A stretch of 64,000 nt of DNA from Hypanus sabinus (taxonomy: Eukaryota). Below are positions 5,966 through 63,389 of the stretch, piece by piece. A program made the position numbers and the translations under genes. The number at the start of each line of letters is the position of its first letter. The stretch's first letter is position 1. The stretch is from NCBI RefSeq assembly GCF_030144855.1, contig NC_082715.1, positions 115,072,001 to 115,136,000 on the forward strand, given 5' to 3'. The notes under the pieces are model-generated. The model saw only the letters and a list, made by a program, of their open reading frames with translations, ran no database searches and had not been told where the DNA came from.

Positions 5966-6489
5966 CATGTCCCTATTGGATTTGCCTTCACTACCACTCC
6001 TGGAAGCACATTCCAGGCACCCACCGTGTAAAAAAAAACTAACCTTGCTCTGCACATCTCCACTGAACTTACCCACCTCACAACTTAAATACATGTTCTC
6101 TACTCTTAAGACATTTCAACCCTAGCAACGCAGGGAAGCAAGAGTTTGCTGAGGGACAGAGGGGCACTGGGTGACGCAGTTTACAGAGATGATGAAAGAC
6201 TGTTGGGTGATGGGGGTGACCATCACAGAGTGTTCCTGAGTGACAGGTGACACACAGGCTACAGGGACATGATGGACGGTGTTGGGTGACAGAAGTGACA
6301 CTGATAGGAAGGGAGGGAAGGAACTGAAAAATGAAAGTACTTTAAAATGAGGATGTAAACCAGGAGACAAGACCTGCGAGCCTGGATCTCTCCCTCCTGA
6401 CCAAAAGCACTCTGTACAACTATTCCACTGTGATCTGCACCAGGGTTCATTACTGGGTTACCAGCTGTCCTTTTCAGCTGGTACAGCCA

Positions 6490-6740: not shown

Positions 6741-7421
6741 ATATCATCAGAAAGCATTTCCTCTCATTTCTCAGCATTCGATTTCATCTCATCTATCTAC
6801 CACCTTTAACGTTTTCAAACATTCACCCAAGAGCTGTCTGAACAACTCAGCTCCCCAATTAATGGAAAAGGTGACCAAAGGCACAAGCTGTCAGGGACGT
6901 CCAGGTCTTGCGGTCTATCACCTGATGCCTGACATATAAATACAGAATCCAAGTGGCAACAGGAACAAATCAGTCCCAGTGCAAACTTAGTCACTGACCA
7001 AGAAGTAGAGTAGAGTTTCCCTGGCACAGTGTCAACATCATCTCCCTCAATGTCAGCAAAACAAAGGGACTGATTCTGACTTCAGGAAGAAGGGCAGAGT
7101 ACGTGCCTCCGGATGTATCCGTGGTGCTGAGGTACAGAGCTTCATGTTCCTAGGTGCAAACATCAGCAGCAGCCTGTCCTCACCCAACCACATTGACGCC
7201 AGGGCCAAAGAAGTGCATCAGTGCCTCTACTTCCTCAGAAGACAGGAAATTTGCACGTCTCTGTTGACTCTCATGAGGCCCTCTGTTGGTCAGGGCTGAA
7301 CAGTGACACTGCTTCCGATGTGATGCACAAGCCAGGGTAGTACCATCTGGAGAACAAGCTGTTAGCTATGCAGCAGGCTCCCCTCTCCACACACATCATC
7401 AATCCAAAGAATAGAGAGGCC

Positions 7422-23618: not shown

Positions 23619-23788
23619 AATGGCTGAATGGATAAAGAAGCAGGCAGAGCGGGAGACAGAGAAAGAGCAGAGGCGACTGGAACGATTGCAGCGCAGGCTC
23701 GCTGAGCCCAAGCACTACTTCACTGACCCACAGTATGAGCAGCAGCTGGACGAAATGTCGGAGCGACTGGAGGACTCTGTGCTTAAAG
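23619..23788 (+). CDS. SDE2: SDE2 exon 4 ([56 protein letters not shown]), coiled coil
   Basis: Lies within ORF 23620..23937; cag| acceptor and G|gtatag donor; 170 nt; phases fit. Confidence 0.95.
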
Positions 23789-23915
23789 GTATAGTTACCT
23801 TTGCCTACTCTTGCTCTGGAATATTTCTGTTTGCAAATTGGCTGCACTATTTTCCATGTCTTGGACTGGCACTGGCATTGTGTGAGGTATCTTTAAATTT
23901 TGTATTTCTCTTGAG

Positions 23916-24825: not shown

Positions 24826-27574
24826 CATGGATTGATACCTGGAAATATGATGTTGTAGTTATTAGTGAAACATAGTTTCAGGAGGGGTGTGATTGGCAAC
24901 TAAATATTCTTGGATTTCGTTGCCTCAGGTGTGGTAGAATCGGAGGGACAAGAGGGGGAGGTGTTGCGTTGCTTATCAGAGAAAATATTACAGCGGTGCT
25001 CTGGCAGGATAGATTAGAAGGCTCGTCTAGGGAGACTATTTGGGTGGAATTGAGGAATGGGAAAGGTGTACTGATACTTACAGGGGTGTATTATAGACCA
25101 CCTAATGGGGAGCAAGAATTGGAGTAGCAAATTTGCAAGGAGATAGCTGATATTGTAGTAAGCACAGGGTTGTGATTGTGGGAGATTTCAATTTTCCACA
25201 CATAGACTGGGAAGCCCATTCTGTAAAAGGGATGGATGGTTTGTAAAATGTGTGCAGGATAGTTTTTTGCAGCAATACATAGAGGTACCAACTAGAGAAG
25301 GGGCAGTGTTGGATCTCCTGTTAGGGAATGAAATAGGTCAGGTGACGGAGGTATGTGTTGGGGAGCACTTTGGGTCCAGTTATCAGAATACCATTAGTTT
25401 CAATATAATTATGGAGAAGGATAGGACTGGAGCCAGGGTTGAGATTTTTGATTGGAGAAATACTAACTTTGAGGAGATGCAAAAGGATATAGGAGTGGAT
25501 TGGGATAATTATGGGAAGGATGTAATAGAGAAATGGAGGTAATTTAAAGGTGAAATTTTGAGGGTACAGAATCTTTATGTTCCTGTTAGGTTGAAAGGAA
25601 AGGTTAAAAGTTTGAGCGAGCTATGGTTTTCAAGGGATATTGGAAACATGGTTAGGAAAAAGAGAGATATCTACAATAAATATAGGCAGCATAGAGTAAA
25701 TGAGGTGCTCAAGGAATATAAAGAATGTAAGAAGAACCTTAAGAAAGAAATTAGAAAAGCTAAAAGAAGATACGAGGTTGCTTTGGCAAGTAAGGTGAAA
25801 ATAAATCCGAAGTGTTTCTGCGGTTATATTAATAGCAAAAGGATAGTGAGGGATAAAATTGGTCCCTTAGAAAATCAGAGTGAACAGCTATGTGTGGAGC
25901 CGAAAGAGATGGGGAAGATTTTGAACAATTTCTTTTCTTTGGTATTCGCTAAGGAGAAGGATGTTGAATTGTGTAAGGTAAGGGAAACAAGTAGGGAAGT
26001 TATGGAAACTATGACAATTAAAGAGGAGGAAGTACTGGCGCTTTTAAGGAATATAAAAGTGGGTAAGTCTCTGGATCCTGTCAGGATATTCCCTAGGACC
26101 TTGAGGGAAGTTGGTGTAGAATTAGCAGGGGCTCTGAAAGAAATATTTCAAATGTCATTAGAAACGGGGATGGTGCCAGAGGATTGGCATATTGCTCATG
26201 TGGTTCCATTGTTTAAAAAGGGTTCTAAGAGTAAACCTAACAATTATAGGCCTGTCAGTTTGACGACAGTGATGGGTAAATTTAATGAAACGTATTCTTA
26301 GAGATGATATATATAATTGTCTGGATAGACAGGGTCTGATTAGGAACAGTCAGCATGGATTTGTGCGTGGAAGGTCATGTTTGACAAATCTTATTGAATT
26401 TTTTGAAGAGGTTACGAGGAAAGTTGACAAGGTTCCGCATGGAAGGTTAATTAGGAAGGTTCAATCATTAGGTATTAATATTGAAGTAGTAAATGGATCA
26501 ACAGTGGCTGGATGGGAGATGCCAGAGAGTAGTGGTGAATAACTGTTTGTCAGGTTAGAGGCCGGTGACTTGTGGTGTGCCTTGGGTCTGTATTGGGTCC
26601 AATGTTGTTTTTCATATACATTAATAATCTGGATGATAGGGTGGTAAATTGGATTAGTAAGTATGCAGATGATACTAAGGTAGGTGGCTTTGTGGATAAT
26701 GAAGTAGGTTTTCAAAGCTTGCCAAGAGATTTAGGCCAGTTAGAAGAGTGGGCTGAACGATGGCAGATGGAGTTTAATGCTGATAAGTGTGAGGTGCTAC
26801 ATTTTGGTAGGAATAATCCAAATAGGACATACATAGTAAATGGTAGGGCATTGAAGAATGCAGTAGAACAGAGTGATCTAGGAATAATGGTGCATAGTTC
26901 CTTGAAGGTGGAATCTCATGTGGATAGGGTGGTGAAGAAAGCTTTTGGTATGCTAGCCTTTATAAATCAGAGCATTGAGTATAGGAGTTGGGATGTAATG
27001 TTAAAATTGTACAAGGCATTGGTAAGGCCGAATTTGGAATATTGTGTACAGTTCTGGTCACCGAATTATAGGAAAGATATCAACAAAATAGAGAGAGTAC
27101 AGAGAAGATTTACTAGAATGTTACCTGGGTTTCAGCACCTAAGTTACAGGGAAAGATTGAACAAGTCAGTTCTTGATTCTTTGGAGCGTAGAAGGTTGAG
27201 GGGGGACTTGATAGAGGTATTTAAAATAATGAGGGGGATAGATCGAGTTGACATGGATAGGCTTTTTCCATTGAGAATAGGGGAGATTCAAACAAGAGGA
27301 CATGAGTTGACAGTTAAGGGGCAAAAGTTTAGGGGTAACACGAGGGGGAACTTTTTTACTCAGAGTGGTAGCTGTGTGGAATGAACTTCCAATAGAAGTG
27401 GTAGAGGCAGGTTTGGTATTGTCATTTAAAGTAAAATTGGATAGGTATATGGACAGGAAAGGAATGGAGGGTTTTGGGCTGAGTGCAGGCCAGTGGGACT
27501 AGGTGAGAGTAAGTGTTTGACGTGGACTATAAGGGCCGAGATGTCCTGTTTCTGTATTGTAAATGTTATATGGT
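24826..27574 (+). mobile_element. CR1-clade LINE, 5'-truncated and decayed ORF2 (endonuclease remnant + RT) in SDE2 intron 5
   Basis: ORFs 25252, 25558, 26285 and 26572 contain NYRPVSLT, SQHGFVRGRSCLTNL, YADD, LVRPNLEYCVQFWSP and RRLRGDLIEVFKI; frameshifts and stops; short-repeat 3' tail. Confidence 0.93.
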
Positions 27575-34557: not shown

Positions 34558-34879
34558 CTATATGACCGAGACATTGTTGGTGGTGCAGCCACACTTCTCG
34601 GTGATCATGTTGGGGAACTCAGCCACCTCGATCTCCGTGTAGTTGCCCATCTTCATCAGGTACATCACAGGCAGCGAAGTGCTCTTCACCCCCACACAGC
34701 TCCTCTCTCCATAATCAAAAGGCCACCGTGGCTGCTTGCAACCCCCAAGGCAGCGAAAGGCCTGGTAACCAGGGGGCTCGATGATCCAGTACTGGGTCCA
34801 CGGCAGGTCCCGGAAGCTGATGAAGTGCTCCTGCCTGCAGCATGTCCTGCCTTTCTCTGCACCACAGTCACCAGTGCTC
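34558..34879 (-). CDS. LEFTY: Lefty exon 4, TGF-beta cystine-knot domain (GDC...CCRQEHFISFRDLPWTQYWIIEPPGYQAFRCLGGC...SC...FPNMITEKCGCTTNNVSVI*)
   Basis: Lies within ORF 34558..34899. Lacks the dimerisation cysteine and extends beyond CxC, both Lefty hallmarks. Total CDS 1089 nt = 362 aa. Confidence 0.96.
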
Positions 34880-35937
34880 CTGGATGTGATAGAACACAAA
34901 TACTGGTTACCGAGTAAAAGCTAAGTGGGGAAAATTGTTTCGATGCAACAAATTAGTTTGGCTAGTTAACTGAATCAAAAGCAGCTTTTCATACTCTTTT
35001 CTGACGTGAAGAAATGTCCTTTTAATACCAATATGCAGATGTCATAGGATCGTGTAAATGACCTGAGAGAGAGGCTCTCACAAATGGCAGGAGAGCAGAT
35101 TAAGCAACTTTCCAGTCAGCAGTTAGCTGTCTACTGATGATCTGAAAAGAGTGCAGTCTAAATTTTCTGTAGGGTGTCAGCAGGAAGGCCAAGTTTTTAT
35201 TCATGAAACTTGATTGAACTAGTCTGGAAAAAAAGGTGTCAAGAATTGTATACTATTGTGGTTCCATGCAGTTAACTGAAATTGTGACCAATATAAATAT
35301 TCCTGATCTCTTAAACTCAGTTTCACTGTTGAGTTTCAAAAGATAAATGTCAATCAATTGATTGTGTTATCAGTCAACTGATAGAGGGAAACTCCACGCA
35401 TTCTTATAAGAACTGCAAGACTTTTAATTCATCTTGTAGCTGAGATGAGGTAACACTGTACTTCCAAATATAACTTTCAGCCCTGTGTTCCAGTGTGTAG
35501 ACCCCTGGTTAAATGGGAAGTTGGCATAATTCCTGTCTCAATAATTAACTTTGAAGTGACTTGGCAGAAGTAGAGCTTATTGTGAGTTTGTAGTAATTGC
35601 TTTTGTCTTGCTCTCTACTGGCTGCCTGAAACAAATTTCAGGATGTATGTCAGTGATAATAAAACTGATTCTATTTTGATTGTGGTAACAAACAAGAGTT
35701 TCTACCATGTTGAAAATAAAATGTGGCAGCTTTGTTAATACTGTGCGCCCTATCTATTAGATTTTAATTATTTTGTGGCAATGACTATATAGCTTAACAT
35801 AGGATGTAAAGTTAGACTATGCCTGTTTAATTTCAGTGCAGTAAAGTTAATGATTAATTTTGATTATCAGAATAAGCTGTGTGGGGAGAGAGACAAAATT
35901 GGCTATTGCCCGAAAAAGTTCCATAACAAAGACATAC

Positions 35938-36174
35938 CCATATTCTTCAAGGTTGAGAGTATAGAGGACTAATTCTGGTTTGCTCAGTACTTGGTCAGCA
36001 GTGCTTTGAGTGGTGAAGTGCACCAGTTTGGCCAATTCAGCTGCGTAGCTGCCCATGCGCTCTGCCTCAATCCAGATTTCCAGGTGCATGGGCGTGTCTG
36101 CATTCTTCATCCAGTAGTACACGGCCTGTGTGACGTCCAAGCTTTCCCACCCAGAGTCGAGGATAGGAACCAAC
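35938..36174 (-). CDS. LEFTY: Lefty exon 3 (LVPILDSGWESLDVTQAVYYW...KPELVLYTLNLEEYG)
   Basis: Lies within ORF 35847..36173; gccag| acceptor and GG|gtatgt donor; 237 nt. Confidence 0.95.
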
Positions 36175-37802
36175 CTGGCAAATGATGCAAGGCAGAAAGT
36201 TCATTAGTCGATTAATTTGCCTCTTCCTTTTGCACAGTTAAAGTTATTGTGCTGAACCAGTGCTAATTGGAATGGTTACTACGAACAATGTTTGATGTAC
36301 ATTATTATATAAAGTTGAGTAGTCACAGAGTTATGCATCATAGAAACAGTCCCTTTGACCATGTCTTTCCAGGTGCCTTCCTGAGTCAGCTCCATTTGCC
36401 TTAAGAACCTGAGAAACAAAGGATACAATGTCTGATTTACTGTTGCTTCACCGCCCCCCCCAACTGTAATAGTCAATTATTTCTCTCAATTTTTCTTGGA
36501 AAATTGTTAAGGATGTTGCAAATGGATAATTAAACTTAAGCAATAGGATAAGAAGCTGGGTGGTTTGCTCTTCAAAATGTGAAACAACCGTTCAGTCTAA
36601 GCCATCTTTTCACTGCAGGCTTGCAACTTTCTTCCTTGTGTGTGTCCAAGAGCTCTTATTTTAGCTGGTCCCACTATTCATTTGGGATTGGATTCCATGT
36701 CATAAGTTTGCCAAATGAATAAGGTTCTCCCATGTTCTCATGTTTTCTTCAAAGGATGTCTTTCTCGAGTTTATTTTAAAATAGTGTCCCCTGAACCTGC
36801 TGTGTGCAAATTGTGTTTAAGTGCCATCAAGGTTCAGTTTTAATACTGATTTGACTTAAAAGTCATGGTAATTGATCCTGGGTGCCACTGTAAGTATCCT
36901 TCACTGATTCCATTGTGGGTGGAAGCGAATAAACTACTTGGGTTTACTGCTGCTGATTGCAATCCTATTCTATTAAACTTGAGGGCAGGGTTGGTTCCAG
37001 CTGCTGTGCTCTGCAACTCATAGATCTTTGCTTGTAAGGCAGCTGTGAAGAATATGCATTGTGTGGAGCTGCTGTTTCAAAAGCAGATTGAAAACATAAT
37101 TTTAAAAGTCAGTTTCTACATGAAATTTTACTTTTGAATATTTTGTTCTATTTTATTAACATTTATACATTTCCAGGCATGTATGTGCAGATGGGTACAA
37201 TTGACAGGATGTTATTATGTGCATCCTACGACATGCAATAGAAGTAGGGAAGTGGGTGGGTGGTGGGTTGCGGAGAACAGCAGAAATTAGAGGGAAACAT
37301 CTGGACTCCACAACACCAGATTGTTGTTTTGCTGTGGTGTATAGCCTCCCCCATGAGGAGAGTACATGTGGTGAGGCCTGTGTGGTTTGGAACTGAAACA
37401 AGAAGTGATCTCATTAAAATATATAAAATGTTGTGATGAGATCTCATCTGGGAGACCGGGAATAACCATCACAGTGATAAACTGCCCTTTGGAAGAGGGA
37501 CTAAAGCTGGAAGTTTCATCTAAAGTAAATTTAGTGTAGTGGTGTTACAGTAGGTTGTGTTGTCCAGAGTGACTGAAGCAACACAAAAAGTGGTGGAAGA
37601 ACTCAGCAGGTCAGGCAGCATCTGTGCATGGAAGTGGGCAATCAACGTTTCAGCTCCAGATCCTCCCAGAAAGTTAATGTTTTGGGTCATCTCTACCCCA
37701 AATGTCAACTGTCCATTTTCCTCCATTAATGCTGCCTGACCCACTGAGCTCCTCCAGCTCTTCTATTAGAGATAAAATCCCACCCTGAGTTATTTTAGAA
37801 TT

Positions 37803-38235
37803 CAACATAAGAATGTAAGAAATAGAAGCAGGAGTAGGCCATTCGGCCCATCGAGCCTGCCCCGCCATTCAATAAGATCATGACTGATCTGTCAGTAAAC
37901 TCAGCTCCATCTGCTTGCCTTTTTCCCACAACCTTTAATTCCCCTACTATGTAAAAACCTATCTAACTGTATCTTAAATATATTTAGTGAAGAAGCCTCA
38001 ACTGCTTCCCTGGGCAAATAATTCCACAGATTCACCACTCTTTGGGAAAAACAGTTTTTCCTCATCTCCAACCTAAATCTTCTCCCCTGAATCTTGAGGC
38101 AATGTCCCCTAGTTCTAGTCTCACCTACCAATGGAAACAACTTTCCTACTTCTATCTGATCTATCCCTTTCAAAATTTTGTATGTTTTAATAAGATCCCC
38201 TCTCAATCTTCTGAATTCCAGAGAGTATAGTCCCA
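37803..38235 (-). mobile_element. CR1 LINE 3' fragment in Lefty intron 2
   Basis: ORF 37901..38329 contains YSLEFRRLRGDLIKTYKILKG...TRGH...FSQRVVNLWN. Confidence 0.85.
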
Positions 38236-38579
38236 TATTTTTTTTAAAATTTAGTTTTATTTGGAATGGGAATCTCTTTTCATCGTGATTGCCCATAGAA
38301 GTTGAAGATTGTTGTAAAAACATTATCAATTAGGACCTGACTCATATAGAGACAAAGTCTTCAGCCCACCATGTCCACGCCTACCTCTACAATCATATTT
38401 GTGTTAATCCCATGACCCTTTGACCTGCTTATTCAAGTGCTCATCTAGGTACATGTTGAATGTTGTTACTGTCCTTACTTCCACCGCCACCTCTGGCAGC
38501 TTACGCCCTCTTTTAACTAATGTCTACCAGAGATAAAACCCAAGGAGTTTGTCCTACACTGACATGTTTCCTTCCTATA

Positions 38580-40540
38580 CACACAAAATGCTGGTGGAAC
38601 TCAGCAAGTCAGTCAATGTCTATGGATGGGGAGTAAACAGCTGACACTTTGCCTTGGAAAGGAAGGGGCCAGAAGCCAGAATAAGGTAAGAAGATGGGGG
38701 AAGTAATTCAAGCTGGCAGGTGATAGGTGAGATCAGGTTAGGGGGAAGGAGGGTAAGTAGGGAAGGGGTGAAGTAAGAAGATGGAAGATAAATAGGAGAG
38801 GTAAAGGCTGATGAAAGGAGGAATCTGATAGGAGAGGAGAGTGGACTATGGAAGAATGAGGAGGAGGATAGGAACCAGAGTGGGATTGGCAGGTGAGAAG
38901 AGAAGGGGCGAGAGGGTAACCAGAATGAGGACGGGTAAAGGAGAGGGGAGAAACTGCTGGGAGTTGGAGAAACAATGTTCATGCCATCAGATTGGAGGCT
39001 ACCAGATAGAATGTGAAGTGCTGCTCTCCAACCCATTTAGCCTCATCATGGTAGTCGAGGAGGCCATGGATAGACATTTCAGAATGGGAAGTCAAACTCA
39101 AAATGTGTTGCCAATGGAAAATGGTGGAAGTTACTGAGAATGATGTGCTGGATATGGATGCTTGTGGGATGGTAGGTAAGGACAAGGGAAACCCTATTCC
39201 TGTTATGACGGGAAGATGGCTGAAGGTAGATATGCAGGAAATCGGAGGAAATGCAGGCAAGGGCAGCATCACTCATAGTGGAAGGGAAACTCCATTCTTT
39301 GGGAGGAGAAAAGGACATCGCAGATGTTCTAGAATGAAAAGCCTCCTGAGAAAAGATACGATAGAGACTGAGGAACTGAGAATGGAAATAGCATTTTTAC
39401 AAGTCACAGGGTAGGAAGGGGTAGTCAAGATAACTGAGTAAGTAGGTTTGTAAAAGATGTCAGTAGATGATCTGTCGCCAGAGATAGCAGAAAGGGAGAG
39501 AAGTGTCAAGAGATGGGCAGCTAAATTTGAAGGCAGGGTAGAAGTTGGGGGCAAAGTTGAGCTCAGCATGGACCCAGGAAGCAGCACTAATGCAGTCATC
39601 AATGTAACAGAGAAAAAATTGGAGGGCATGGACTGTTCCACGTGATGAAAAGGAGGGTAAAGCAGGGGCCAATGCGATTGCCCATGGCTATACCATTGGT
39701 TTGGAGAAAGTGGGAGGAGTTGGAAGAGTTAAGCCAGGTGGAGGGAACTGGTTAGGTCTTCTTGTTGTGACAGAAGCAGAGTGCTTTGAGGCCTTTCTGA
39801 TAGGGACTAAAGTGAAAATGAGGTGATCCAGGCCGGGGAACTGAAACTGACTGAAGTGATGAAGTGACATGGATATAGGTGGGAAAGGACTGAGCCAAGA
39901 GGGTTAAAATGGAGTTGAGGTATACTGATACAAGCTCAGTGGAGCAAGAACAGGTTGAAACAATAGCCTTACTGGACAATCAGGTTTGTGGATCTTGGGT
40001 AGGAGGCAAAAGTAAGGGAACTGTGAGCTCAGTGGCAGTTGATGGGAGATCTTCAGAGTTGATGAGGCAGAGACGGTGTGGGAAACAATGACCTGATACT
40101 CCTTAGTCGGGTTTAGTGCAAGGAGTAAATAAGAGGAGATGTATGAGAGCTGCTGTCCGGCCTCAGCAAGATAGAGATCACTGTTCAGATTAAAACAACC
40201 ACCCCCCCTTCCTGTCAGCAAGTTTGAGTGAAGTTGGTATGGTGAGAGTGAGAGTGGAGGACAAGTGTGCTCAGAGAGGGTTAGGTTAGCTCTTTTCTTC
40301 ATTCTCCCCTCCCCCCATCCATCCAGCCACCTTCCCCTCACTTTCTCACCTATCACCTGCCTGCCTGTACTCCTTCCCCACCCTGCATCATCTTATTCTC
40401 GCTTCTGCCTCTTTCCTTTACAATCCTGCTGTAGGGTCTCAAACTGTTTATTCTGCTGCCTGCCTAGCTGAGTTCCTGCAGGATTGTGTGTTATGTGTGT
40501 GCAGTACTCTGGATTTCCAGTATCTGCAGAATCTCCAGTT
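38580..40540 (-). mobile_element. Penelope-like retroelement, decayed, in Lefty intron 2
   Basis: - strand relics LLPKIHKPDCPVR, YIDD, STDIFYKPT, NRVSLVLTYHP and a GIY-YIG-region HCHDEA-like motif; flanked by inverted terminal repeat copies. Confidence 0.78.
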
Positions 40541-40639
40541 TCCCTCCAGACATCAGTCCATAAGGCGTCTTCTGCTGTAGCCGATCTTTGTCAGCAACAG
40601 ATGGCAGTGCTTACAGGTGAAAGCAGCTATATTTTTAAA

Positions 40640-41800
40640 AGTAAACTCGAGATTCTGCAGATGCTGGACAAGAGCAACAATTAAATAGTCAACATTTTGG
40701 GCTGAAAACCTTCATCAGGACTGGAAAGGAAGGGGGGAGAAGCTGGAATAAGGTGGTGAGAGGAGGGGAATGAATACAAGCTGGAAGGTGATAGGTGAAA
40801 CCAGGTGGGTGGGGGAGACAGCATGAAGTAAGAAGCTGGGAGGCGAAAAAGTTAAAGGGTTGGGAAAGAAGGAATCTGATAGGAGAGGGGTGTGGACCAT
40901 TGGAGAAAGGGAAGTGAAGGAGCACCAGGGGAAAATGATAGGCAGGTGAGGAGAAGTAACGGGACCAGAGTTGGAACTTGGAAAAGAGGGAAGGGGGAGG
41001 GGCAAATTACCAGAAGTTGGAGAGATTGATGTTCATGCCATCATTTTGGAGGCTACCCAGACAGAATACTGTATAAGGTGTTGCTGCTCAAACCTGATAG
41101 TAGCCTCATTGTGGCAATGGAGGAGGCCTTGGGCAGACGTGTTGGAATGGGAATAGGGATAGGAATTAAAATGGTTGGTCACTGTGAAATCTAGCTCTTT
41201 GTAACTGGAGCAAAGATGTTTGACAAAGCAATTCCCCATTGTACATTAGGTCCCACCTCTACAAAGGAGGCTGCATTGGGAGCATTGGATATAGTAGATA
41301 ATCCCAAAAGATTCACAGGTGAAGTGTTGCCTCGCTGTTTGGGGCCCTGAATGGAGGTGAATGAGCTTATGTAGCTCTTGTACTGGCAGAGTTAAATACC
41401 AGGAGGGAGCTTAGTGGGTAGGGATGAACAGACAAGGGAATCAGGAAGGGAGTGGTCTTTCCATAAAGCAGAAACTGAGGGGGAGGTAAAGATGCGTTTG
41501 GTGGTCAGGTCCTGTTGAAGATGTTGGAAGTTGCAGGGAACGATGTGCTGGATGCAGAGGCTCACGGGGTGGTAGGTGAGGACAAGAGGAACTCTATCCC
41601 TGTTAAGGTAGGGTGAGGACGGATGTTCAGGAAAAGGAGGAGATGCAGGTGATTGCAGTGTAAATGGTGAGGAAAGGAAAACCCCATTCTTTGAAGGAGG
41701 AGGACATATCTGATGTCCTGGAAAGGAAATCCTCATCCTGGGGACAGATGTGGCAGAATCGAAGGAACTGAGAAAAGGGAATGGCCTTTTCACAAGCTGG
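40640..41800 (-). mobile_element. Second Penelope-like 3' fragment; other fragments at ~28515-29130 (+) and ~59180-59580 (+)
   Basis: DRVPLVLTYHP (ORF 41392) and NHFNS...GLLHCHNEATIRFEQQHLI (ORF 41033). Confidence 0.78.
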
Positions 41801-42126
41801 GTGTAAAGATGATCATGGGAGTCAGTATGTTTATACCAGATATCAGTAAAACAATATGTTTTACAATAACCTTAATGGTGATTGTAGCTTTGCACTTTAT
41901 TTGTCTACCTGCACAGCTAGCTTTGTAAGTGAAGCTCATTGCCTTGAGAACAAACTTGTATTTGTCAGTTTAAATAATGTGGTGATTATTTATTGAATGT
42001 TTGTTATTGATTAATGATTGGGGAGGGAAAAGCTTATGGGAAAGATCAATGTTAACATTTTTTAAATTGTCTTGACTCAGCTGTGCAAATCCCTGGATTA
42101 TATTCCAACATTAGACTTGCCCTTAC

Positions 42127-42370
42127 CTGGAGTCTATGAGTGAGGTGCTGTTGGTGCCGTCGGCCAGGGTCTTGACCCAGTACACACTGACCCTGGCGTT
42201 GTTGACTGGCGGGCTGTGTTTCCTGGGTGGGAGCTCCCCCTTGTGGACGCCCTTCTTGAAGAGCTTGAGCTCTGCCATGGTCACCTCGCTGTTGTCCGGG
42301 ATCAGCCCCTTCATGTCGAAAACCAGCCTCTGCCGGGTGGGGCCCGAGTACAGCACGTCTTCGGTTGTGC
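42127..42370 (-). CDS. LEFTY: Lefty exon 2 (GTTEDVLYSGPTRQRLVFDMKGLIPDNSEVTMAELKLFKK...VNNARVSVYWV...TSLIDSR)
   Basis: Lies within ORF 42123..42431; cccag| acceptor and AG|gtaagg donor; 244 nt. Confidence 0.95.
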
Positions 42371-43270
42371 CTGGGGACAAAGAACTGGTTAGTTGGAAGG
42401 TTTTAAACTTCCCTATCCATCTTGAGTACATTGGTTACTTGTATCAGAGGAAAAAATACTAAATTATCTGTACTTCGCACAGTGTGAAACTACGGCCTTT
42501 GTCATCTTTGAATTCCCCCAATCGTTAAAGAAGCTGGGGAGTTCTTGAGTTGATCAGTTGCCAGCAATAAATGTACAGGTTACAGAAACTGGAAGTGCAC
42601 TTTGTTAAGTGCATATCGATTAACTGTTGGGATTGTACTTCAGCTTTGCACTTCACTTGTCCACCTGCACTGACTGTACCACTGTAATATGTATTCTCTT
42701 TTGTATTACATAATTGCCTGGGTGGTGGGTAAATAATCGGTCATTGGTCTATTATTATCACATGTATAGAGACACAGTGAAAGGCCGCTTTGTGCATCAG
42801 AATATAGAGATAGTACAATGGGAAAAAGATAGAATATGATAAACCGAATACCACCACAGTAAACCTCAGAACTCACATGTGACGATGGTTCGAGAACTCT
42901 GGCTGCATGCTTTCCACGTAGGAATTCCCCAACCCTGGTGTGTAAAACCACGTGGGGCATTTTCACCCTATCAATGCTCCTCATGATTTTATACACCTAC
43001 AAGGTCCTCCCCTCAGTCTCCAACACTCCAGGGGAAAAAATCCCTGCCTGTCCATGTAACTCAAAACTACATTTAGTCTGTGGGGCACGGGTGACAATAG
43101 GGAGAAGTGAGCATCTCCCTTCATTACCTATACTGCAACATTCCAGCACAGTGCAACGTTTGGAGAGATTGAGGCAAGGGGCAGCAGAGAGAGATTACAA
43201 GTTAGCACTAGGAAGGGACATAATTGCATTTCTAGTTTCAAAGTCAAAAGCAAATTAAAAACTGCATTAC

Positions 43271-43556
43271 CTGTAATTTCTCGCAAGATGCCGGCCAGGC
43301 TGGGCAGGGCTCTCCGCTTCCTCTCCTTCTCCTTGTGCCGTTTTAGCATGGACATGTACTTGTTCCGGAGATGTGTCGGCACCACCACCTTCTCAAGGTC
43401 CCTCTTCTCCATTTGTGGCACTTCACTTAGGCCAAGCTTGTGAAGCATAGCGTTCTTAATGCTGTCGTGGGAGACTCCACTCACTGGGGCTGTCTGCAGC
43501 ACCAACAGAACAAAGACAGGCAGCATAGTGGTCAGGCTGGTGTTGATTCTGATCAT
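43271..43556 (-). CDS. LEFTY: Lefty exon 1: signal peptide and prodomain with RKRR convertase site (MIRINTSLTTMLPVFVLLVLQTAPVSG...RKRRALPSLAGILREIT)
   Basis: Lies within ORF 43128..43616. RRALPSLAGILR is characteristic of non-mammalian Lefty/antivin. Donor ACA G|gtaatg. An alternative ATG lies at 43526. Confidence 0.92.
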
Positions 43557-43699: not shown

Positions 43700-43855
43700 T
43701 TTTATAGTAGCAGCTGCCATCCAGACTAAGCAGATTATATAAAGACTGCAGACATCAAACACCACTGGCTCAATCACACCATTCAGTTTGATTGACACCT
43801 TCCAGGTTATGTGCAAATTGCAAACTAACCAGGGGGATGGGCTAATTTGCAAAAA
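43700..43855 (-). promoter_or_regulatory. Lefty proximal promoter: TATAAAA plus SMAD, T-box and octamer-like motifs
   Basis: TATAAAA on the - strand at 43706-43700, ~145 nt upstream of the ATG; CAGAC/AGAC at 43722, 43743, 43749; TCACACC 43774-43780; TGACACCT 43793-43800; GTGCAAAT 43811 and ATTTGCAA 43845. Confidence 0.6.
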
Positions 43856-46800
43856 ATATAACATATTTCCAACCTCCAAACTCGTCTTTGTGCAATTTAT
43901 TACAACCACAAATTATGTGCACTTGTTTCTTTTATTTTGGCCATCTCTCATCTTTGCCCTGACTGATTATTTGCTTTTAGACTGGTGACCAATGCTCTTT
44001 AAGAGGTGCAGTGCTGCAGGACAACTCTTATAGGGCATACGTAACTGTCCCAGATGCTTTGAGTGTTGCCAAAATGGGTAAAGTACAAGGCAAAGAAAAC
44101 TGTGGGCACTCAGAACAAATCAGTTTTCCCCATTTTGACAATGCAGGATTGTGCAGTGGAGATTTGTGCAAGTTTCTGAGCATTTTCTCAGCAGAGAGTT
44201 TGCTTTAGTCTAATTCAGTTGCAGGTGCCATAGAATAAAATATGGTGTGAGGTGCATCCTGTGGACTGAAGAATTGCAAACACATCCACCTCAGTATCTG
44301 TGAAATGAGCACTAGGAGCTGCTGTAAAATCCAAGCTGCTCAGGCTGCTCCTCGGAGTTGATGATACTTTCCATGCAGTTGTAGCTGTCCCTGTGTGACC
44401 CACGAGTAGTTAAGTCAGGGCATTTAACTTGACTATTCAGATTTCTCTGCAAGATGCTACAATATTGTTGCTAGTCAAGTTCCCACTTGGTAGAAGGTGG
44501 CAGCAGCACATCCATCCCACCGGTCTCCCAAACGGTTGTCTGTGTGTACCAGATGTCCGTAATTCAGGCATTTGTAACCTGGGGAGGATCTGTACAGATA
44601 AACATAAATGCTCTTGCCCATAGCTCCCTTAAACTCCTTGCCCTCAACAGTCCGTTTTAGTCCCAAGCTGGAGCAGCCTGACAGGCCCCTCATTATTCTG
44701 GTGAATATAGCAGCAGCACGTCTTTCTGGTGTTTTACAGCAACAGCTCTCCTCAATGGGAATAGCAGTCACAATTGGCATTAGGAGGGCTTTATGACAGC
44801 AATCTGCATCAAGATCAAGAGCAGTACATAAGTTTCTGACATTGTTATTGTAGCAAGAACTTGTGGAGCATTAGAACATTCTCATTGATAAAATCATCAG
44901 ATATCAACTGTTTTGTGCATTGTAAACCTGTCACTGAAAGTACATTTCCAGGATAACTGGCTTTGGTGGTTGACCAATTATTCTTGCATGTACTGAGATG
45001 CAGTGAAAATCTTATAGTGTGCCATCCAGAAAGATCCTTGTGTGCATAAGTACATTGAAGTAGAACTAAAGGAAACACAATAGCATGGAGATGGTGTTAC
45101 ATCACAGAGAAAGTGTAGGGCCATGACATGATAAAATGAAAGATCAAGAATTTGTTCTGTATGAGGATCTTAATACAGTAGGAGAGAAGCTGTTCATGAG
45201 CCTGGTGGAAGGCGTTGTGTTCTTAAATTTTGTATCTTCTGCCTGACTTAGGGGAGGGGATTTGGCAATGGGCATTTAACAGGGGAGGGAGTGACCATGA
45301 TGGCAGGTTCCTCGATTATGTTGGCTGCTTTTCTGATACAGCCGGAAATATTGGCACAGTCTGCGGAGGTAAGGCTGGTTTTCATATAGACTGGACTGGT
45401 ATATTTGCATTGTCAGGTTCTTGTGGTCTAAACAGTGGAGAACCCTTTATTCTGCAGGACTGGGGAGAAAGGTAAAGGAACCAGAATGAGGAATTACAGG
45501 TTAGTGTGCATTAAGTCTAGAATTGCGAGGCAGACCATTGGGTCCATCTGCTCTGACTGAGAGTGCCATACTCTTTAATCTAAACATTCAATGTACTCCA
45601 TTCATACTTCAGCTGAAATCCATGTGTCAGTCACCTCTTCTACCCCCTGTGTTAAACAATTCAAATGCTTCAAATGGTTTCGGTGTGTGTCTGTCCCAGG
45701 AGAGAGTGGAATATACAGTTACAAACTCATTCCATTCCTCAGCCGAATGTGGTGCTAATGTTGTCAGACTTAATTCTTCATTAAAGTAATTAAGTGCAGA
45801 GAAATAGATGGCTGGCAGCAAGTTAGGAAGTTGCAAATCAATGTACTGAATGAAAATTGCTGCTTTAGTATTGCTCAAATATACAGTGTTCCAAGGACTA
45901 GACCATCTAATGACAGTCAGTTTCAAATCAAGTTTTTAAAACTGTGGGTAATAAAGATCTGCTTAATGCTTTGCCAATGGCATACGTGAATGTATTCAAT
46001 GAACGTTTGCACTGTACAAAGCCACAGAGTGGTGGAATTAATGGTTGTCGACTGGGACACCAACCGTTGTCCATTCCCCCGTTGGCCCATGGACTCCATC
46101 AATGAGAGAATCCATCTTTGTGAGGCACATTTCTTATTACTTTCCATCTTCCATTTAAAATCCTTTCCTGACCTTTCTCTTTCATCTCCATGGACTCTCT
46201 CTATCCTATATCCTTGGAGATACCTGCAGTCCAAGTTTAACTGCTACGTCATTGATGGGACTGCCCTCATACTCCCAAGGGGCAAAGCTTTCAAACTCAG
46301 TTAAACTGTTAACGCTTATTTCCTTAATCAGAGTTTCTGCCCCTGTAAGGCCCAGTGGTGGTCTTTGTTTGATAATGGCTCTATGAACTATTTCTGGGTG
46401 TTCTGCTCTGTTACAGGTACTACATTAGTGTGCATTGTTAATGACCCAAAGTGATCATATGGTGGTTCTCTTCAAAATTCCGGAAAAGTTTTATTGAGTG
46501 GTTCAATCATCACAAACTGCATTTCCTTTTTTGAGTGGGGGATGGGGGATTAGAAAATGGGCAGTGAAAAATAACCAGGTACCTCCTGTGAGGTATCTGT
46601 GGACTTATGTCTCTGCCAGGGGTCTTAATACGGAGAGGAGAGCACAGGGAAAAAAACTTGAGTTTCAAAATCATTGTAAACTTGGAAGGGGGGGACTGGT
46701 TGGGAATTGTTCAGCAGCTTTGGGCTTGTCACTGAGTTGCTCATCAGTGTTAAGTGACAAACTACATGCTGATTGATTAATTTTCCTCAGTATCAGAGGA

Positions 46801-47054
46801 AGATACACACAGTGAAATGGTGATGCACAGCTATTACCTCCCAACTGCAGAGATGCTGGTTCTTTGTGTGGAGTTTACACCTTCTACCTGTGCTTACATG
46901 GGATTAACCTGGATGAGATATGTGCAATATCTGTTTCCCCTGGCTGGGATACACACAGTATGGTTCCACCCGGTTGAGATACCCGAACATAAAGTCATAC
47001 AAAAAGGGGGGAAATCTGCACGTGCTGGAAACCAGACGTAGAATATAGAGCAAT

Positions 47055-48730
47055 ACATCACCCATGGTGTACATCACGGGAGCAGGTCTATCAGTCCATG
47101 GTGTACATGACGGGAGTAGGTCCATCAGTCCATGGTGTACATCACGGGAGTAGGTCCATCAGTCCATGGTGTACATCACGGGAGTAGGTCCATCAGTCCA
47201 TGGTGTACATCACGGGAGTAGATCCATCAGTCCATGGTGTACATCACGGGAGTAGGTCCATCAGTCCATGGTGTACATCACGGGAGTAGGTCTATCAGTC
47301 CATGGTGTACATCACGGGAGTAGGTCTATCAGTCCATGGTGTATATCACGGGAGTAGGTCCATCAGTCCATGGTGTATATCACGGGAGTAGGTCCATTAG
47401 TCCATGGTGTATATCACGGGAGTAGGTCCATCAGTCCATGGTGTACATCACAGGAGTAGGTCCATCAGTCCATGGTGTATATCACGGGAGTAGGTCTATC
47501 AGTCCATGGTGTACATCACGGGAGTAGGTCCATCAGTCCATGGTGTACATCACAGGATTAGGTCCTTCAGTCCATGGTGTACATCACGGGAGTAGGTCCA
47601 TCAGTCCATGGTGTACATCACGGGAGTAGGTCTATCAGTCCATGGTGTATATCACGGGAGTAGGTCCATCAGTCCATGGTGTACATCACGGGAGTAGGTC
47701 CATCAGTCCATGGTGTACATCACGGGAGTAGGTCCATCAGTCCATGGTGTATATCACGGGAGTAGGTCCATCAGTCCATGGTGTACATCACGGGAGTAGG
47801 TCCATCAGTCCATGGTGTACATCACGGGAGTAGATCCATCAGTCCATGGTGTACATCACGGGAGTAGGTCCATCAGTCCATGGTGTACATCACGGGAGTA
47901 GGTCCATCAGTCCATGGTGTATATCACGGGAGTAGGTCTATCAGTCCATGGTGTATATCACGGGAGTAGGTCTATCAGTCCATGGTGTACATCACGGGAG
48001 TAGGTCTATCAGTCCATGGTGTATATCACGGGAGTAGGTCCATCAGTCCATGGTGTACATCACGGTAGCAGGTCCATCAGTCCATGGTGTACATCACAGG
48101 AGTAGGTCCATCAGTCCATGGTGTACATCACAGGAGTAGGTCCATCAGTCCATGGTGTACATCACGGGAGTAGGTCCATTAGTCCATGGTGTATATCACG
48201 GGAGTAGGTCCATCAGTCCATGGTGTACATCACGGGAGCAGGTCCATCAGTCCATGGTGAACATCACGGGAGTAGGTCCATCAGTCCATGGTGTATATCA
48301 CGGGAGTAGGTCTATCAGTCCATGGTGTATATCACGGGAGTAGGTCTATCAGTCCATGGTGTACATCACGGGAGTAGGTCTATCAGTCCATGGTGTATAT
48401 CACGGGAGTAGGTCCATCAGTCCATGGTGTATATCACGGTAGCAGGTCCATCAGTCCATGGTGTACATCACAGGAGTAGGTCCATCAGTCCATGGTGTAC
48501 ATCACAGGAGTAGGTCCATCAGTCCATGGTGTACATCACGGGAGTAGGTCCATTAGTCCATGGTGTATATCACGGGAGTAGGTCCATCAGTCCATGGTGT
48601 ACATCACGGGAGCAGGTCCATCAGTCCATGGTGAACATCACAGGAGTAGGTCCATCAGTCCATGGTGTATATCACGGGAGTAGGTCCATCAGTCCATGGT
48701 GTACATCACGGGAGTAGGTCTATCACCCAT
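47055..48730. repeat. 34-bp minisatellite, ~49 copies (CATCAGTCCATGGTGTACATCACGGGAGTAGGTC)
   Basis: Head-to-tail units with point variants only and no unique spacers. Confidence 0.97.
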
Positions 48731-49189
48731 GATATCTGTGTCATCATCATGTGAAATCAGTCACTGCCTGAATATTCATATACTTATGTAACAGCCCTTT
48801 AGACTCTGCTATTGTGTCTGCTTCCACCACCACCCATGGTGGCCCTTCCCACGAGAGCATTCGTTTTATCGAAAGTCCTGGAGTAAGGATCAACAAACTC
48901 ATTCCTACCCAGACAGCAGGGGAATCAATTTTAAAATTTAAACCTCTTGAACCTAGTACTTGCAATCTCTTAAGCCACACAATTCAGAAACATTAAATGT
49001 TGGCCTTGTAACTTTTAATTAAAAGGTTGTTTTAAATGCATCTTGCCCAGCCACTTTGTTTGTCAGAGAGAAGCATCTGTGAGGAGAAAACACTGCCCTT
49101 AAGTGTAATGTTTTCACAGAGCTTGTTTGTATCCAGTGTTGTTTTTCACTCTGCATCCCAAAGTCAAGTCAGAATCAGTTGCCATCCAA

Positions 49190-49310
49190 ATGTCAGACTG
49201 GGTGCTAATGTCTCGCAGCCTCTCATCAAACACAGGAGTGATGTTGTGTATTCTAGGAACTCCAGGTTTAGAAGGTGATAATTCCCGAGTAGCGGGATAT
49301 GTGGATTGCA
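49190..49310. promoter_or_regulatory. Candidate Nodal-responsive (ASE-like) Lefty enhancer with two FoxH1 sites
   Basis: TGTGTATT 49245-49252 and TGTGGATT 49300-49307, same orientation and 55 bp apart, with CAGAC (~49194) and GTCT (~49210) SMAD elements, in sequence I do not recognise as repeat. Confidence 0.55.
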
Positions 49311-52300
49311 AGCTTTCTCAGGGCAATGCTTATCCTTTTGGATCGCAGAATTTGCCAGCAGCCTTTGTAATGCAAACGTCGGAGTCAGCAATTGTAACTG
49401 TAGAAACTGCAGTGAGTCCATGTGTGCAACCAAGGAAAGATGTGTGGAGTCTCAGCTCCAGCTGTTTAACAGATAAATATTTAGTATACAAATTGTGCAA
49501 TCCTAGGCAGGACCTCTGCAGCCACCATACTCCCACAGCACTGTTCCATGGTTCAAGTTGAGGTTTTCGATGTTGCTGCAGATAAAATTCATTTAAAAAA
49601 ATGTAAGAGGGAAGAAATATTTACACCCCAAAATGGAACCTTGACCTATTGTCTGCCTTCAATGCATTTTCTCTGTATGCTCTGTTCTGCGATTATTTTC
49701 CCCTTGTACTGCCTTGGTGTTTAATGTGATGAAATGATCTGTTTGGATGGTAAATTGGTCTATTATTGCCATTTGTTCCAAAGTTCAGTGGAAAAATTTG
49801 TCTTCCTTACTGCACATACAATTATCGTATATCTTATTGTACTGGGTGATTGTTTACTAGTCTTCTAATAGAGGGACCGAAGCATGCAAGTAATTTTTTC
49901 ACTATACCTCGGTGCAAGTGACAATAATAAGCCAGTGTATTAGTTTAATTTATGATTGGTGTAAGTGGATGATTAATGTTTGGCATGGAGTAAATGGACC
50001 GAAAGGCTCATTTCTGTGCTTTGTGACTCTAATGACTCACAACCCAGCACTCTAACGTGACCAATTAAAGTTAATGTTGCAGTATTTAACAATAGTGCAG
50101 TCAGTTTAGCATTTACATTTGTTAGGAGGCGTAGCTTGTAGGAAATGCAGAGATTAGAGTTTTATTGTAAAGGAAGTTGCTGATAACTGTTCTCATCAGA
50201 TCTAAGTCTATAGGCAATTTGTCATACCTATTTACTTGTTATCTTTCCACAGTTGGCTGAGTAGTAATGGATTACACTTTATAACCCTTAATTTGTATTT
50301 TGTTTCTGCACATTATTTCATGAATACACTGAACCTCTGTCTTGTCTATCATTAAACATCCATGCTAGCAATCTGGAGTAATAAACTGAGATTGTCTTCA
50401 TTGTTCATGCATCAAAGTTGGAAATAGTTTGAATGTATACCTCTGGTCTGAAAATAGATATGCATTTTGTGAGGTGGAGAGGGAAGTTCTATTTAAACAA
50501 ATATTAATTAAGCCTAAATGTGCTACATTAAATTTGTTTATTATTGCCATATGTAGTAAGGTGCAATGTAAAACATTGTTTCCCTTGGCATCCATACAGA
50601 TCATTTCATCACATCAGTACGATGAGGTAGTGCAAGGGAAAGGCAATAAATGATTCAGAATATAGTGTTACTGTAAGTGCAGAGCCTTGACGAGGTTGAT
50701 TATGAGTCAAGAGTCCATCTTAATGTTTAATAGTCTGACAACAGCAGGAAGAAAGTTATCCATGAGCCTCATATGGTACATGATTTATACCTTCTAAAAG
50801 CTTGAGTGTGTTGGGGGGGAGGGGGGGTTGATGCAGAAGAAAGTATCTAGGGTGGGTAGGATCATTGATAATGTTGACTGCTTTACTGAGGTAGCAAAAA
50901 GTGTTAAAATGCCACGGAGGAGAGGCTGGTTTCAGTGATGTGCTGAGCTGCATCCACAACTTCCTGCAGTTTCTTGCTGTCTCGGACAAAGTAGTTACCA
51001 TATCAAGCCATGAGGCATCCGGACAGAATGCTTTCTGTGGTGCCTCTGTAAGCTTTGTCTCCTGATGAAGTAGAGGAGCTGGTGCACTTTGAAGTGGCTG
51101 GTTTTGGTACCAGGTCGCTCAGCTGACAATGAATTACACTCTGTTTCTCTTGGCCCTTATTATATGATCCAGTGATGTTGAGTCAAGTTCAGTGAAATCA
51201 CAGTCAGTTGACCTTGGCTGTAACACCAGGCTGCTGCAAACATGCAGTTGAGTTGGTCATATGGATAAGTAATGTACAGGTGCAAAGAAAAGCTTACTTG
51301 CATCAGCATCACAGGTACATTGCAACTTTCTCAAAGAAAACACAAATTATATAGAGATTTTACAGGAGAATGCAAAGCAAAAGCAAAAGTACATTTTAGT
51401 CCAAGTGGTTGAAGGGATGTTGCTGTTCTTGGACCTGGTGGTGTGGGACTTCAGCCTTCTGTCCTTCCTGCCCAGTGATAGCTGCAAGAAGATGGAATGG
51501 CGATGTTTGGATGTTGCTGCCTTAAGACAGTGCCTCCTGTAGATATGGAGGAATGTGCCCAAGGTGTATTAGGCTAAGTCTGCTCCTCAGTTCGTGTGCA
51601 TTTAAATTGCTGTACTTGGACATGATACAACTTGTAAGGATACTTACAATAGTACATCTGTAGAAGTTTTTATAGAGTATTTGGTGACAAGCTGAACCTC
51701 CGTTTTTATGTCAAAGGAAAAAGTTGGTCATTTCCATCTGCCCTGTCTATTTTTTTTAAATCACGGTGAACACTATCACCTAGTATTTGATATCCATCTA
51801 ATTTTTCCAGATCTTTTATGTGCTCACATCAAGGCAGAATCTTTGTCTGCATTATTCCCTTTGATGTACTGTGCAGTGGAAGAGTTGGGATGTTGTTGCT
51901 ACATGTGTTCTGTAGGCAGGAGACTGCAGATGCTGGAATCTGAAGGAACTCAGCAGGTCGATGCAGAGTTTTGACCCAAAATGTTGACAATTCGTTTCCC
52001 TCCACAGATGCTGCAAACATGCTGCTCAACCTGCTGGGTTCCTCTGGCAGATTTTTTTCTCGCTTGAAGTATTGTACAAAGTTCTGATCCCCTCGCTGCA
52101 AGAAGGGTGTCATTAAGTTGGAATGTGTTCAGAAAAGATTCACTAGGGTGTTACTAGGTCTGGGGAGTCTTGAGTTTTAAGGAAAGACTGGATAGATTGG
52201 ATTTTTTATGCCCTGGAGTGTATGAGGCAAGTGCAATTAAAACATTCAAAAAGTATTTGGGCAGTTACATATATAGCAGATGTTTAGGGAGCTTTTGGGT

Positions 52301-61056: not shown

Positions 61057-63173
61057 GATATAGGGAGGAGGTACCCATGAACACTACCTCACTACTTTTT
61101 TTTGCACTACTTACTTAATTTAACATTTTAAATATATATATAAACTTACTGTAATTTCAGTTTTTCCGATATATTGCAATGTTCTGCTGCCACATAACAA
61201 ATTTTATGACATATGCCAGTGATTTAAACCTGATTCTATACAAATTTGTATCAGTCTATGGTGACATACCAAATCTCCTCAAATTTCTAGTAACTTGGAG
61301 CCACGAGCATGCCTTCTTCATGATTGCATGGGATTACTTGGGATAGGTCCTCCAAGATGTTGATGCCTAGGAACATGAAGCAGTCCATCCCTTCCACTGC
61401 TGACCCTGGAATGAGAACCGGCGTTCTCTCCCTTCTAGCTCCACGGTCACTTCATTAGTCTTGCTGACAATGACACCGTTTAAGCGGATCTCAGTAGTGT
61501 GCGCCTCCTCATCACTATCTGAAATTCTTCAGTGGTGTGGTCGGTGAACTTGTAGATGGCACCACGGTTTATGGATTGAGCTTGGAGCCTGCTGGCTCAG
61601 TGCACTCATCTATTTGCTGAATCCATTCACAGCTGCACCAGGGAAGCTGCTGCCTGTTGGAATGCTATGGGTACAGATGTCCTTCAGTGTCAACAGGTCA
61701 CCTAGGTTCCTCTTAGTTCTCGGGAGAAATATATAGAGAACAGTCTGAAAAAGTTAGTGTTGTACAGAAAGGACACATCCTTTGGTCTGTTTCATCCACG
61801 ATGACCAAGATGGCTATCTAAGCTAGTCCATTTTGCCCATGTACCTGTCGGAATGTCTTTTAACTCTTGTTATTTTAGTGGTGGATGATTGGTTTGGTGG
61901 CTGGATACAGCCAAGTCACAGTGGTTCTCAGGGTTGGGCCCTGCAGTCTCGTCTGTAACTCAGTGAGTAGCACTCCCTTTTAGATCAGAATTGCCGTCGG
62001 TTAAGTCCAGAGGTTTGAACAATAATTGTAATCTACAGTACCTGTGGGCAAGCTGCATTCTTGGGCATGCCATCTGTCTCAGGACATGTTAAACTGAGGC
62101 CCCACTGCTGTTCCTGGGTGAACTTAGAAGATCCTATGGAATTCATATTGCCCTTGGCAAATGCTTGCCAGTATCATTGAAGTAAGAGGATGTAAAAACT
62201 GATTCTGGTTGTAGAGACTGGTCACTGATTCAGGAGAGACTCTGAATTGAAAATGAAAGTTAGAAACTGTTGGAAACATTCAGCAGGTCAAGCAGTATCT
62301 GTACTAGAAGAAACATTGAATGATTTGGATCAAAGGCCATTCACCAGCTTCAGACATGTGAAATATGAGGAGTGATCTTGCAGAAGTATCCTTGGGTGGT
62401 GTGACAAGGGAAATGTTGACAAGAGACTGCAGACACTGGAAATCCAGAGCAGTACACAGATGTTGGATGGGTCAGGTAGTATCTCTGGATGAAATGGACA
62501 GTCAGTGTTTCGAGTTGAGACCCTTCACCTAGATTAGGCTCTATTGGTGGAAGAATCTCAAATGAGGATCATAGTTATAAGACTGGGAGGGAGGGCAGTC
62601 TTTTGAAATTGGGAGTGTTTAAAGGGAAGGGAATGATTTTTAAGCATTGGAGAATTGGATCATTATTATTGTCACATGTACTGAAAAGCTTTTGTTTGCA
62701 TGCTATCCAGACAAATCGCTCCGTACATTAGTAGAAAGAAAACGTAATGTAGAATAATGTGTGGTTACAGAGAAGGTTCACTGCAGGCAAAGTGTAAGGG
62801 CTCTGCAGAAGTAGATTGGGAGATGTTCTGTAGCACATGAGCAATTCATTCAAGAGTCTTATAGCAGCAGGATCGAAGCTGTCCTTGAGCCTGCTGGCAC
62901 ATGCTTTAATTTTTTTTTAAACCTTCTGCCTTATGGGAGAGGAGAGAAGAGAATGGTCAGGGCAAGATTGAGGAACCAAGGGACCCACTCCTGGTACATT
63001 AAATGTAAAGCTAAAAATGTCCAAGTAACACTACTTCAATGCAAGTGATTCCCTCCCAACCCCGAAACAAGTGAGTCTGGTTATAATATAACGCTGGCGA
63101 CTCTGACTCCTCGGCTCCTTTCCATTGCCTCTGTTGAATGACTGTGACTTTCCCTCTCCCTACCCCTCCACAG

Positions 63174-63389
63174 GAACCGCGACTGGAGGATTGGAGAACA
63201 TTTAACTCTGCAGAGGAGCTTGAATGCTTGGGACTGGACAGGCTGAAAAGTGAACTGATGGAGATGGGGTTAAAATGTGGCGGGACCCTACAGGAGCGGG
63301 CTGCCAGACTTTTTTCTGTGAAGGGCCTGTCCAGGGAGCAGATTGACCCTACACTCTTTTCCAAGCCAGCTAAAGGAAAGAAGAAATGA
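63174..63389 (+). CDS. SDE2: SDE2 exon 7, C-terminal SAP-type domain ([71 protein letters not shown])
   Basis: [16 protein letters not shown] signature; pyrimidine tract plus cag| acceptor, phase 0, matching exon 6; total CDS 1191 nt = 396 aa. Confidence 0.95.

Follow-up and report, generated by a model that had tools for sequence, protein, structure and literature searches.

A Conserved Element with Paired FoxH1 Sites, a Candidate Nodal-responsive Enhancer, Upstream of Lefty in Hypanus sabinus and Other Jawed Vertebrates

The question raised by this locus is whether a pair of FoxH1 sites upstream of a Lefty gene in the stingray Hypanus sabinus belongs to a Nodal-responsive enhancer, and how far back among the jawed vertebrates such an element can be followed. 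Through feedback between Nodal and Lefty the embryo establishes its left-right axis and keeps mesendoderm induction in check, and the enhancer logic behind this feedback has been dissected in mouse. Enhancers of the ASE type consist of two to three FoxH1 sites (TGTKKATT / AATMMACA) within 30-200 bp and pass Nodal-Smad2 signals on to the genes Nodal, Lefty2 and Pitx2 (PMC2627943, PMC2885315). The upstream regions of mouse Lefty2 and of Lefty in turtle, gecko and chicken have been described as containing ASE-like clusters of FoxH1 sites (PMC9634164), the turtles in that study being Pelodiscus and Trachemys and not Mauremys, which was used here. Mouse Lefty1 has a proximal and a distal element, PE at -1.5 kb and DE at -10 kb, both with paired FoxH1 sites and both Nodal-dependent (PMC5686177). 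FoxH1-dependent Lefty enhancers are already well known. Outside mouse, the literature found goes no further than describing clusters of motifs in the region upstream of Lefty, for reptiles and chicken, and no report of a cartilaginous-fish Lefty enhancer, or of conservation at the level of alignment from shark to reptile, was found in the open-access papers and preprints searched.

The window, i.e. the whole stretch of 64,000 nucleotides analysed (64 kb), contains a Lefty gene with 99.7-100% identity to the Hypanus sabinus protein P0282. There are two Lefty paralogues in cartilaginous fishes, and the gene in the window falls into the group here termed B. Lefty and the gene that hosts it were located as follows:

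34558-43556, minus strand: Lefty gene, chondrichthyan B paralogue, with four coding exons, identified by tblastn with Lefty proteins
43263-43556, 42126-42368, 35937-36179 and 34561-34878, minus strand: Lefty coding exons (tblastn)
23620-23790, plus strand: SDE2 domain (Pfam)
63138-63389, plus strand: last SDE2 exon, SDE2_2C (Pfam domain 63138-63386, E 7e-29)

Since SDE2 domains on the plus strand are found on both sides, the FoxH1 pair as well as Lefty must lie inside an SDE2 intron, in agreement with the preliminary description of this DNA. The host intron is bounded by SDE2 exons at about 30.9-31.3 kb and at 63138-63389, and Lefty-B is nested antisense within it (window 31259-63173). The same nesting is indicated in eight other assemblies (Cetorhinus, Heptranchias, Heterodontus, Callorhinchus, Narcine, Mobula, Chiloscyllium and Hemitrygon), where SDE2 gene calls span Lefty-B. 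No overlapping gene call was present at the gar and turtle Lefty loci. Long plus-strand open reading frames at 25252-27384, reverse-transcriptase-like and with a YADDT motif, were recognized as a LINE fragment in an SDE2 intron.

A motif scan of the region upstream of Lefty gave the following sites:

49245-49252, plus strand: FoxH1 consensus site 1, TGTGTATT, invariant in six of six aligned sequences
49300-49307, plus strand: FoxH1 consensus site 2, TGTGGATT, likewise invariant, as are the A before it and the G after it
49194-49198 (CAGAC) and 49210-49213 (GTCT), no strand assigned: SMAD-type motifs just before site 1

Both 8-mers were found where they had been described, co-oriented on the plus strand and 55 bp apart from start to start, approximately 5.7 kb upstream of the Lefty ATG. 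With sites at 49245 and 49300, the spacing lies within the 30-200 bp given for the two to three FoxH1 sites of an ASE. The SMAD-type CAGAC and GTCT noted earlier near the pair were also present, at 49194-49213. Inside the Lefty gene itself, consensus FoxH1 sites were confined to exon 1 and intron 2, and the consensus scan of the gene thereby bore out the earlier observation that intron 1 has none.

The significance of the pair as such was evaluated by random placement of the observed number of sites in the 64-kb window. The strict motif TGTG[GT]ATT occurred five times in 64 kb, against 6.9 expected from shuffled sequence; this corresponds to one per 12.8 kb and lies within the earlier rough estimate of one such 8-mer per 10-16 kb. 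For five random sites, the probability of a pair within 55 bp anywhere in the 64 kb was 0.017, or 0.009 for a co-oriented pair, and 0.003 such pairs (55 bp or less) were expected within the 10 kb upstream of Lefty. The claim that a close pair is unlikely to have arisen by chance thus held for the strict motif (p about 0.01-0.02 per window), but not for the full published consensus TGTKKATT, of which the window contains 16 sites and for which a pair within 200 bp had p = 0.54. When 39 target-gene loci were screened in mouse together with flanks of 10 kb, 19 of them contained pairs of this kind (PMC2627943), and ASE-like pairs among the Ablim1 candidates were reported to be inactive (PMC2885315), which shows that pairs fitting the definition can lack activity. 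Because such pairs are common, in the window as in mouse loci, and can be inactive, the pair alone proves little. By itself it is weak to modest evidence, and the comparative data are decisive.

For the comparison, the 10 kb upstream of Lefty were searched by blastn at Heptranchias Lefty-B and Lefty-A, Callorhinchus, spotted gar, the turtle Mauremys, mouse Lefty1 and Narcine Lefty-B. A conserved element surrounding the pair, and its homologues, were found at the following positions:

Hypanus window, 49111-49457, no strand assigned: conserved non-coding element, candidate Nodal-responsive Lefty enhancer (blastn against Heptranchias Lefty-B covers 49111-49393; the profile of the six-sequence alignment, A3, matches 49184-49457)
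Heptranchias Lefty-B (L001), 3819-4106, about 6 kb upstream of Lefty: E 7e-60 against the window, 78% over 291 bp
Callorhinchus lefty1 (L002), 6189-6276, about 3.8 kb upstream: E 5e-10 against the window
Heptranchias Lefty-A (L005), 2299-2520, about 7.6 kb upstream: E 6e-18 against the Heptranchias B copy
Spotted gar lefty1 (L004), 8561-8777, about 1.4 kb upstream: E 8e-9 against Heptranchias B
Turtle Mauremys Lefty (L007), 6982-7203 (6950-7257), about 2.9 kb upstream, with the cluster at 2.8-3.0 kb: E 6e-21 against Heptranchias B, 2e-23 against gar and 2e-7 against the window

Homologues were thus present 1.4-7.6 kb upstream of Lefty at five other loci. The A3 profile detected exactly one copy at each of the six loci and nothing else in these loci or in the rest of the window. 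For mouse Lefty1, neither a homologue nor a TGTKKATT pair was found by blastn and A3 profile in the gene and 10 kb on each side. Narcine Lefty-B (L003) gave no homologue by blastn and profile, either within the gene or in the 10 kb on each side of it; in this species the element may be located further away or may have been lost. In Callorhinchus, about 9.9 kb upstream of lefty1 (L002:58-112), the minus strand has a second TGTGGATT/TGTGTATT pair with a spacing of 47 bp, at the edge of the compared locus. It was considered as a copy of the element and treated as unrelated: the flanks are unlike, and the profile gives no match. The alignment across chondrichthyans and bony vertebrates, which had been proposed as a check, accordingly found the sites conserved in related as well as very distant species. 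The homologues upstream of turtle Lefty and gar lefty1 support an origin at or before the gnathostome ancestor, and the element, as judged from sequence, would have been located upstream of Lefty before the jawed-vertebrate lineages separated.

The distribution of invariant bases within the element was analyzed in A3, i.e. in six sequences from five species. All 16 of the 16 motif columns were invariant, compared to 43 of the 270 other columns (Fisher p = 2e-12), and the base on either side of the second FoxH1 site was invariant in the same alignment. The remaining invariant positions included three blocks, GCTTTCACAGG, a TTATC core and CTTTGTAATGCAAAC, and these suggest further regulatory inputs. 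The SMAD-type motifs were only partly conserved and were common to some homologues only. GTCT at 49210-49213 is common to Heptranchias B and gar and is absent in Callorhinchus B, Heptranchias A and turtle. The order of the sites and the position of the last block are given below:

Site order and flanks of the conserved element: ATGTGGATTG
49363-49377, plus strand: CTTTGTAATGCAAAC block, columns TTTG..T.CAAA invariant in A3; by its resemblance, a putative Sox-Oct composite site

On these data, the element at 49111-49457 can with good confidence be regarded as a FoxH1/Smad2-dependent, Nodal-responsive cis-regulatory enhancer of the adjacent Lefty gene, its presumed target. The sequence definition of an ASE, the homology to the turtle cluster and the fact that constraint is strongest on the FoxH1 bases all argue for this assignment. 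It is very probably the cartilaginous-fish counterpart of the upstream, Nodal-responsive Lefty enhancer of amniotes, as had been suggested, given its homology to the cluster of FoxH1 sites upstream of turtle Lefty. From the sequence we infer FoxH1/Smad binding, Nodal responsiveness and left-sided activity of the element. FoxH1 would bind the two invariant sites and recruit activated Smad2/3-Smad4, and Lefty would be turned on at every site of Nodal activity, in mesendoderm and at a later stage in the left lateral plate. Activation of Lefty by Nodal through the element would in turn establish the negative feedback between the two.

A different explanation of the same conservation could be that the element does regulate Lefty, but that its 8-mers serve another forkhead or an unrelated factor, or an expression domain independent of Nodal (midline, pluripotency-type). 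The additional invariant blocks, GCTTTCACAGG, TTATC and the Sox-Oct-like CTTTGTAATGCAAAC, would fit such a function, as would the partial conservation of the SMAD motifs, and midline expression of mouse Lefty1 is independent of its FoxH1 sites (cited in PMC3183088). However, both 8-mers fit the specific FoxH1 consensus TGTKKATT and not the general forkhead core, two to three copies recur at ASE-like spacing in every homologue, and Lefty is a known direct target of FoxH1 and Nodal (PMC5686177, PMC9634164). This explanation is therefore considered unlikely.

It is more improbable still that the conservation is unrelated to Lefty and reflects an intronic splicing or regulatory element of SDE2, an unannotated exon or a non-coding RNA. 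The block does lie inside the SDE2 intron in chondrichthyans, and an open reading frame of 144 codons overlaps it at 49127-49561. On the other hand, the homologues in gar, turtle and Heptranchias Lefty-A are without an SDE2 call and are still located upstream of Lefty, and species differ in how the element is oriented with respect to SDE2. The element is free of any other gene call at these three loci, from which it follows that the element travels with Lefty and not with SDE2. A coding exon was rejected, as the 144-codon frame has no Pfam match and no reading frame survives the alignment gaps of 1, 2 and 5 nt. A structured RNA was rejected as well; no Rfam match was obtained, and the consensus fold was weak, at -9 kcal/mol with a covariation term of 0.04.

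The copy number of the element was studied using sequence data from related organisms. Part or all of a 283-bp core was present in 20 of 24 listed public sequencing runs, representing nine organisms, and none of the runs containing the stretch among these 24 is on record as RNA. Neither a chromatin accessibility (ATAC-type) run nor a ChIP run was identified among them. Contigs of four of these organisms, 93-99% identical to the window, were aligned to 48800-50000. In each of the four, the element was covered by one contig at a depth of 5-9x, while the depth reached hundreds to thousands over the flanks at 48800-48840, 49620-49780 and 49866-49950. The stretch 48850-49620 was unique within the window. 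The sequence, described earlier as apparently unique, was accordingly found to be so in the window and to have single-copy depth in all four organisms. Being single-copy and tracking Lefty, the segment is not a transposon, and the check for a mobile origin was passed with one copy per locus. Among the best-supported 40 of 117 differences, at least ten were located within 49111-49393 and none in either 8-mer; a change inside a site may exist in a single species, the view being that of the best-supported 40 of the 117. In two organisms the three bases directly before site 1 were altered, with site 1 itself kept. The high-copy flank at 49620-49950 contains a small element with inverted ends of 48 nt (49751-49798 and 49892-49939), and many of the relatives' contigs skip about 144 bp within this flank. 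The small element looks like a MITE family common to several related species.

A chance pair in neutral or transposon-derived DNA, which could be argued from the frequency of full-consensus pairs in the window (p 0.54) and in the mouse target-gene loci (19 of 39; PMC2627943) and from the high-copy repeats adjoining the block at 48800-48840 and 49620-49950, is refuted by syntenic homologues with both sites invariant at six loci across jawed vertebrates and by the single-copy status of the element (depth in four related organisms, unique in the window, once per locus), and its probability is considered negligible.

The arrangement of the sites was also compared between the homologues. Gar, turtle and Heptranchias Lefty-A have three sites in the order TGTGTATT, TGTGGATT, TGTGTATT, the first spacer being about 88-95 bp and the second about 119-122 bp. 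In the Lefty-B copies of Hypanus, Heptranchias and Callorhinchus the first spacer measures only 52-55 bp, and the third site has decayed. This third site is still recognizable as TGTGTATA in Heptranchias, with one mismatch, is degenerate in Callorhinchus and is gone in Hypanus, where the corresponding position is:

49412-49429, plus strand: remnant of a third FoxH1 site, aligning with ATGTGTATTG of Heptranchias A, gar and turtle, with no consensus left

The ancestral design, as far as the sequences indicate, was probably three-site and the B copy a reduced form. The preliminary description had dated an upstream two-site ASE design to the gnathostome ancestor; the ancient origin is supported, but the ancestor looks three-site.

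The orientation of the element was found to vary. Four copies (Hypanus B, Heptranchias A, gar and turtle) run antisense to Lefty, and the other two, Heptranchias B and Callorhinchus B, run in its sense direction; at least two flips are therefore needed. Variable orientation relative to the gene is as expected of an orientation-independent enhancer. The orientation in Hypanus may result from a local inversion in the assembly, as the contigs of relatives confirm colinearity over 1.2-1.7 kb only. Inverted repeats that could explain a flip were searched for, and none convincing was found. In Heptranchias, Lefty-A and Lefty-B are placed head to head approximately 41 kb apart on one chromosome (CM068641.1, 127.58-127.65 Mb). 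The element accompanies both paralogues, and its two copies share one genomic strand.

In the proposed history, the element would have been duplicated along with Lefty in cartilaginous fishes, the stingray element would be the Lefty-B copy, and the ancestral element would probably have carried three FoxH1 sites. We give about even chances to a more detailed version, in which the jawed-vertebrate ancestor had TGTGTATT, about 88 bp, TGTGGATT, about 120 bp and TGTGTATT, antisense to Lefty and near-unchanged in gar, turtle and Lefty-A, and in which the B copy, after an inverted duplication, underwent shortening of the first spacer, stepwise decay of the third site and at least two changes of orientation. 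If this is true, the history of Lefty-B would amount to an experiment of nature on enhancer grammar, and the paralogues would perhaps have split Nodal-dependent expression domains between them.

Two further conserved blocks were identified between Lefty and the element:

43709-43919, minus strand: block close to the promoter and conserved at the Lefty-B loci of chondrichthyans (blastn matches in L001, L002 and L003)
45686-45999, minus strand: second upstream block, about 2.1-2.4 kb from the ATG (blastn, Heptranchias E 8e-48, Narcine E 5e-39)

The second block had no match in Callorhinchus, gar, turtle or Lefty-A and contained no FoxH1 consensus site. Found in elasmobranch Lefty-B only, it may be a lineage-specific regulatory element. 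The Narcine Lefty-B gene, which is 19 kb, has retained the promoter block and a block matching window 45686-45999. A 34-bp minisatellite of about 50 copies with 94-98% identity occupies 46926-48750, between the Lefty promoter and the element.

By these results a Lefty enhancer candidate becomes traceable by alignment, and not by motif counts alone, through cartilaginous fishes, a ray-finned fish and a reptile. A fragment of about 300 bp is defined for reporter use. The homologues also provide a natural series of variants, with two or three sites, spacers of 53 or 88 bp and both orientations, which bears on the requirements of FoxH1 enhancers.

Among the closest known systems are the ASE-like clusters upstream of Lefty in turtle, gecko and chicken. 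The stingray element aligns with the three-site cluster of Mauremys and has sites of the same identity and in the same order. It differs from the three turtle sites, with spacers of 88 and 120 bp, in having two sites 55 bp apart in the B copy, the third being lost. With the mouse Lefty2 ASE (Saijoh et al. 1999, 2000, cited through PMC2627943 and PMC2885315) it shares an upstream position, paired FoxH1 (FAST) sites within 30-200 bp and, by analogy, a presumed role in relaying Nodal-Smad2 signals; homology between the two is, however, indirect only, through the turtle cluster. The mouse Lefty1 elements PE and DE also contain two FoxH1 sites each and are likewise located upstream of a Lefty gene, and the Nodal dependence established for them is presumed for the stingray by analogy, whereas the 10 kb upstream of mouse Lefty1 is without a sequence homologue or a TGTKKATT pair. 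The intronic ASE of Nodal and the ASE of Pitx2 belong to the same class, with two to three FoxH1 sites, and act in the same signalling cascade, but they serve other genes from intronic positions, and their likeness to the stingray element is one of enhancer class.
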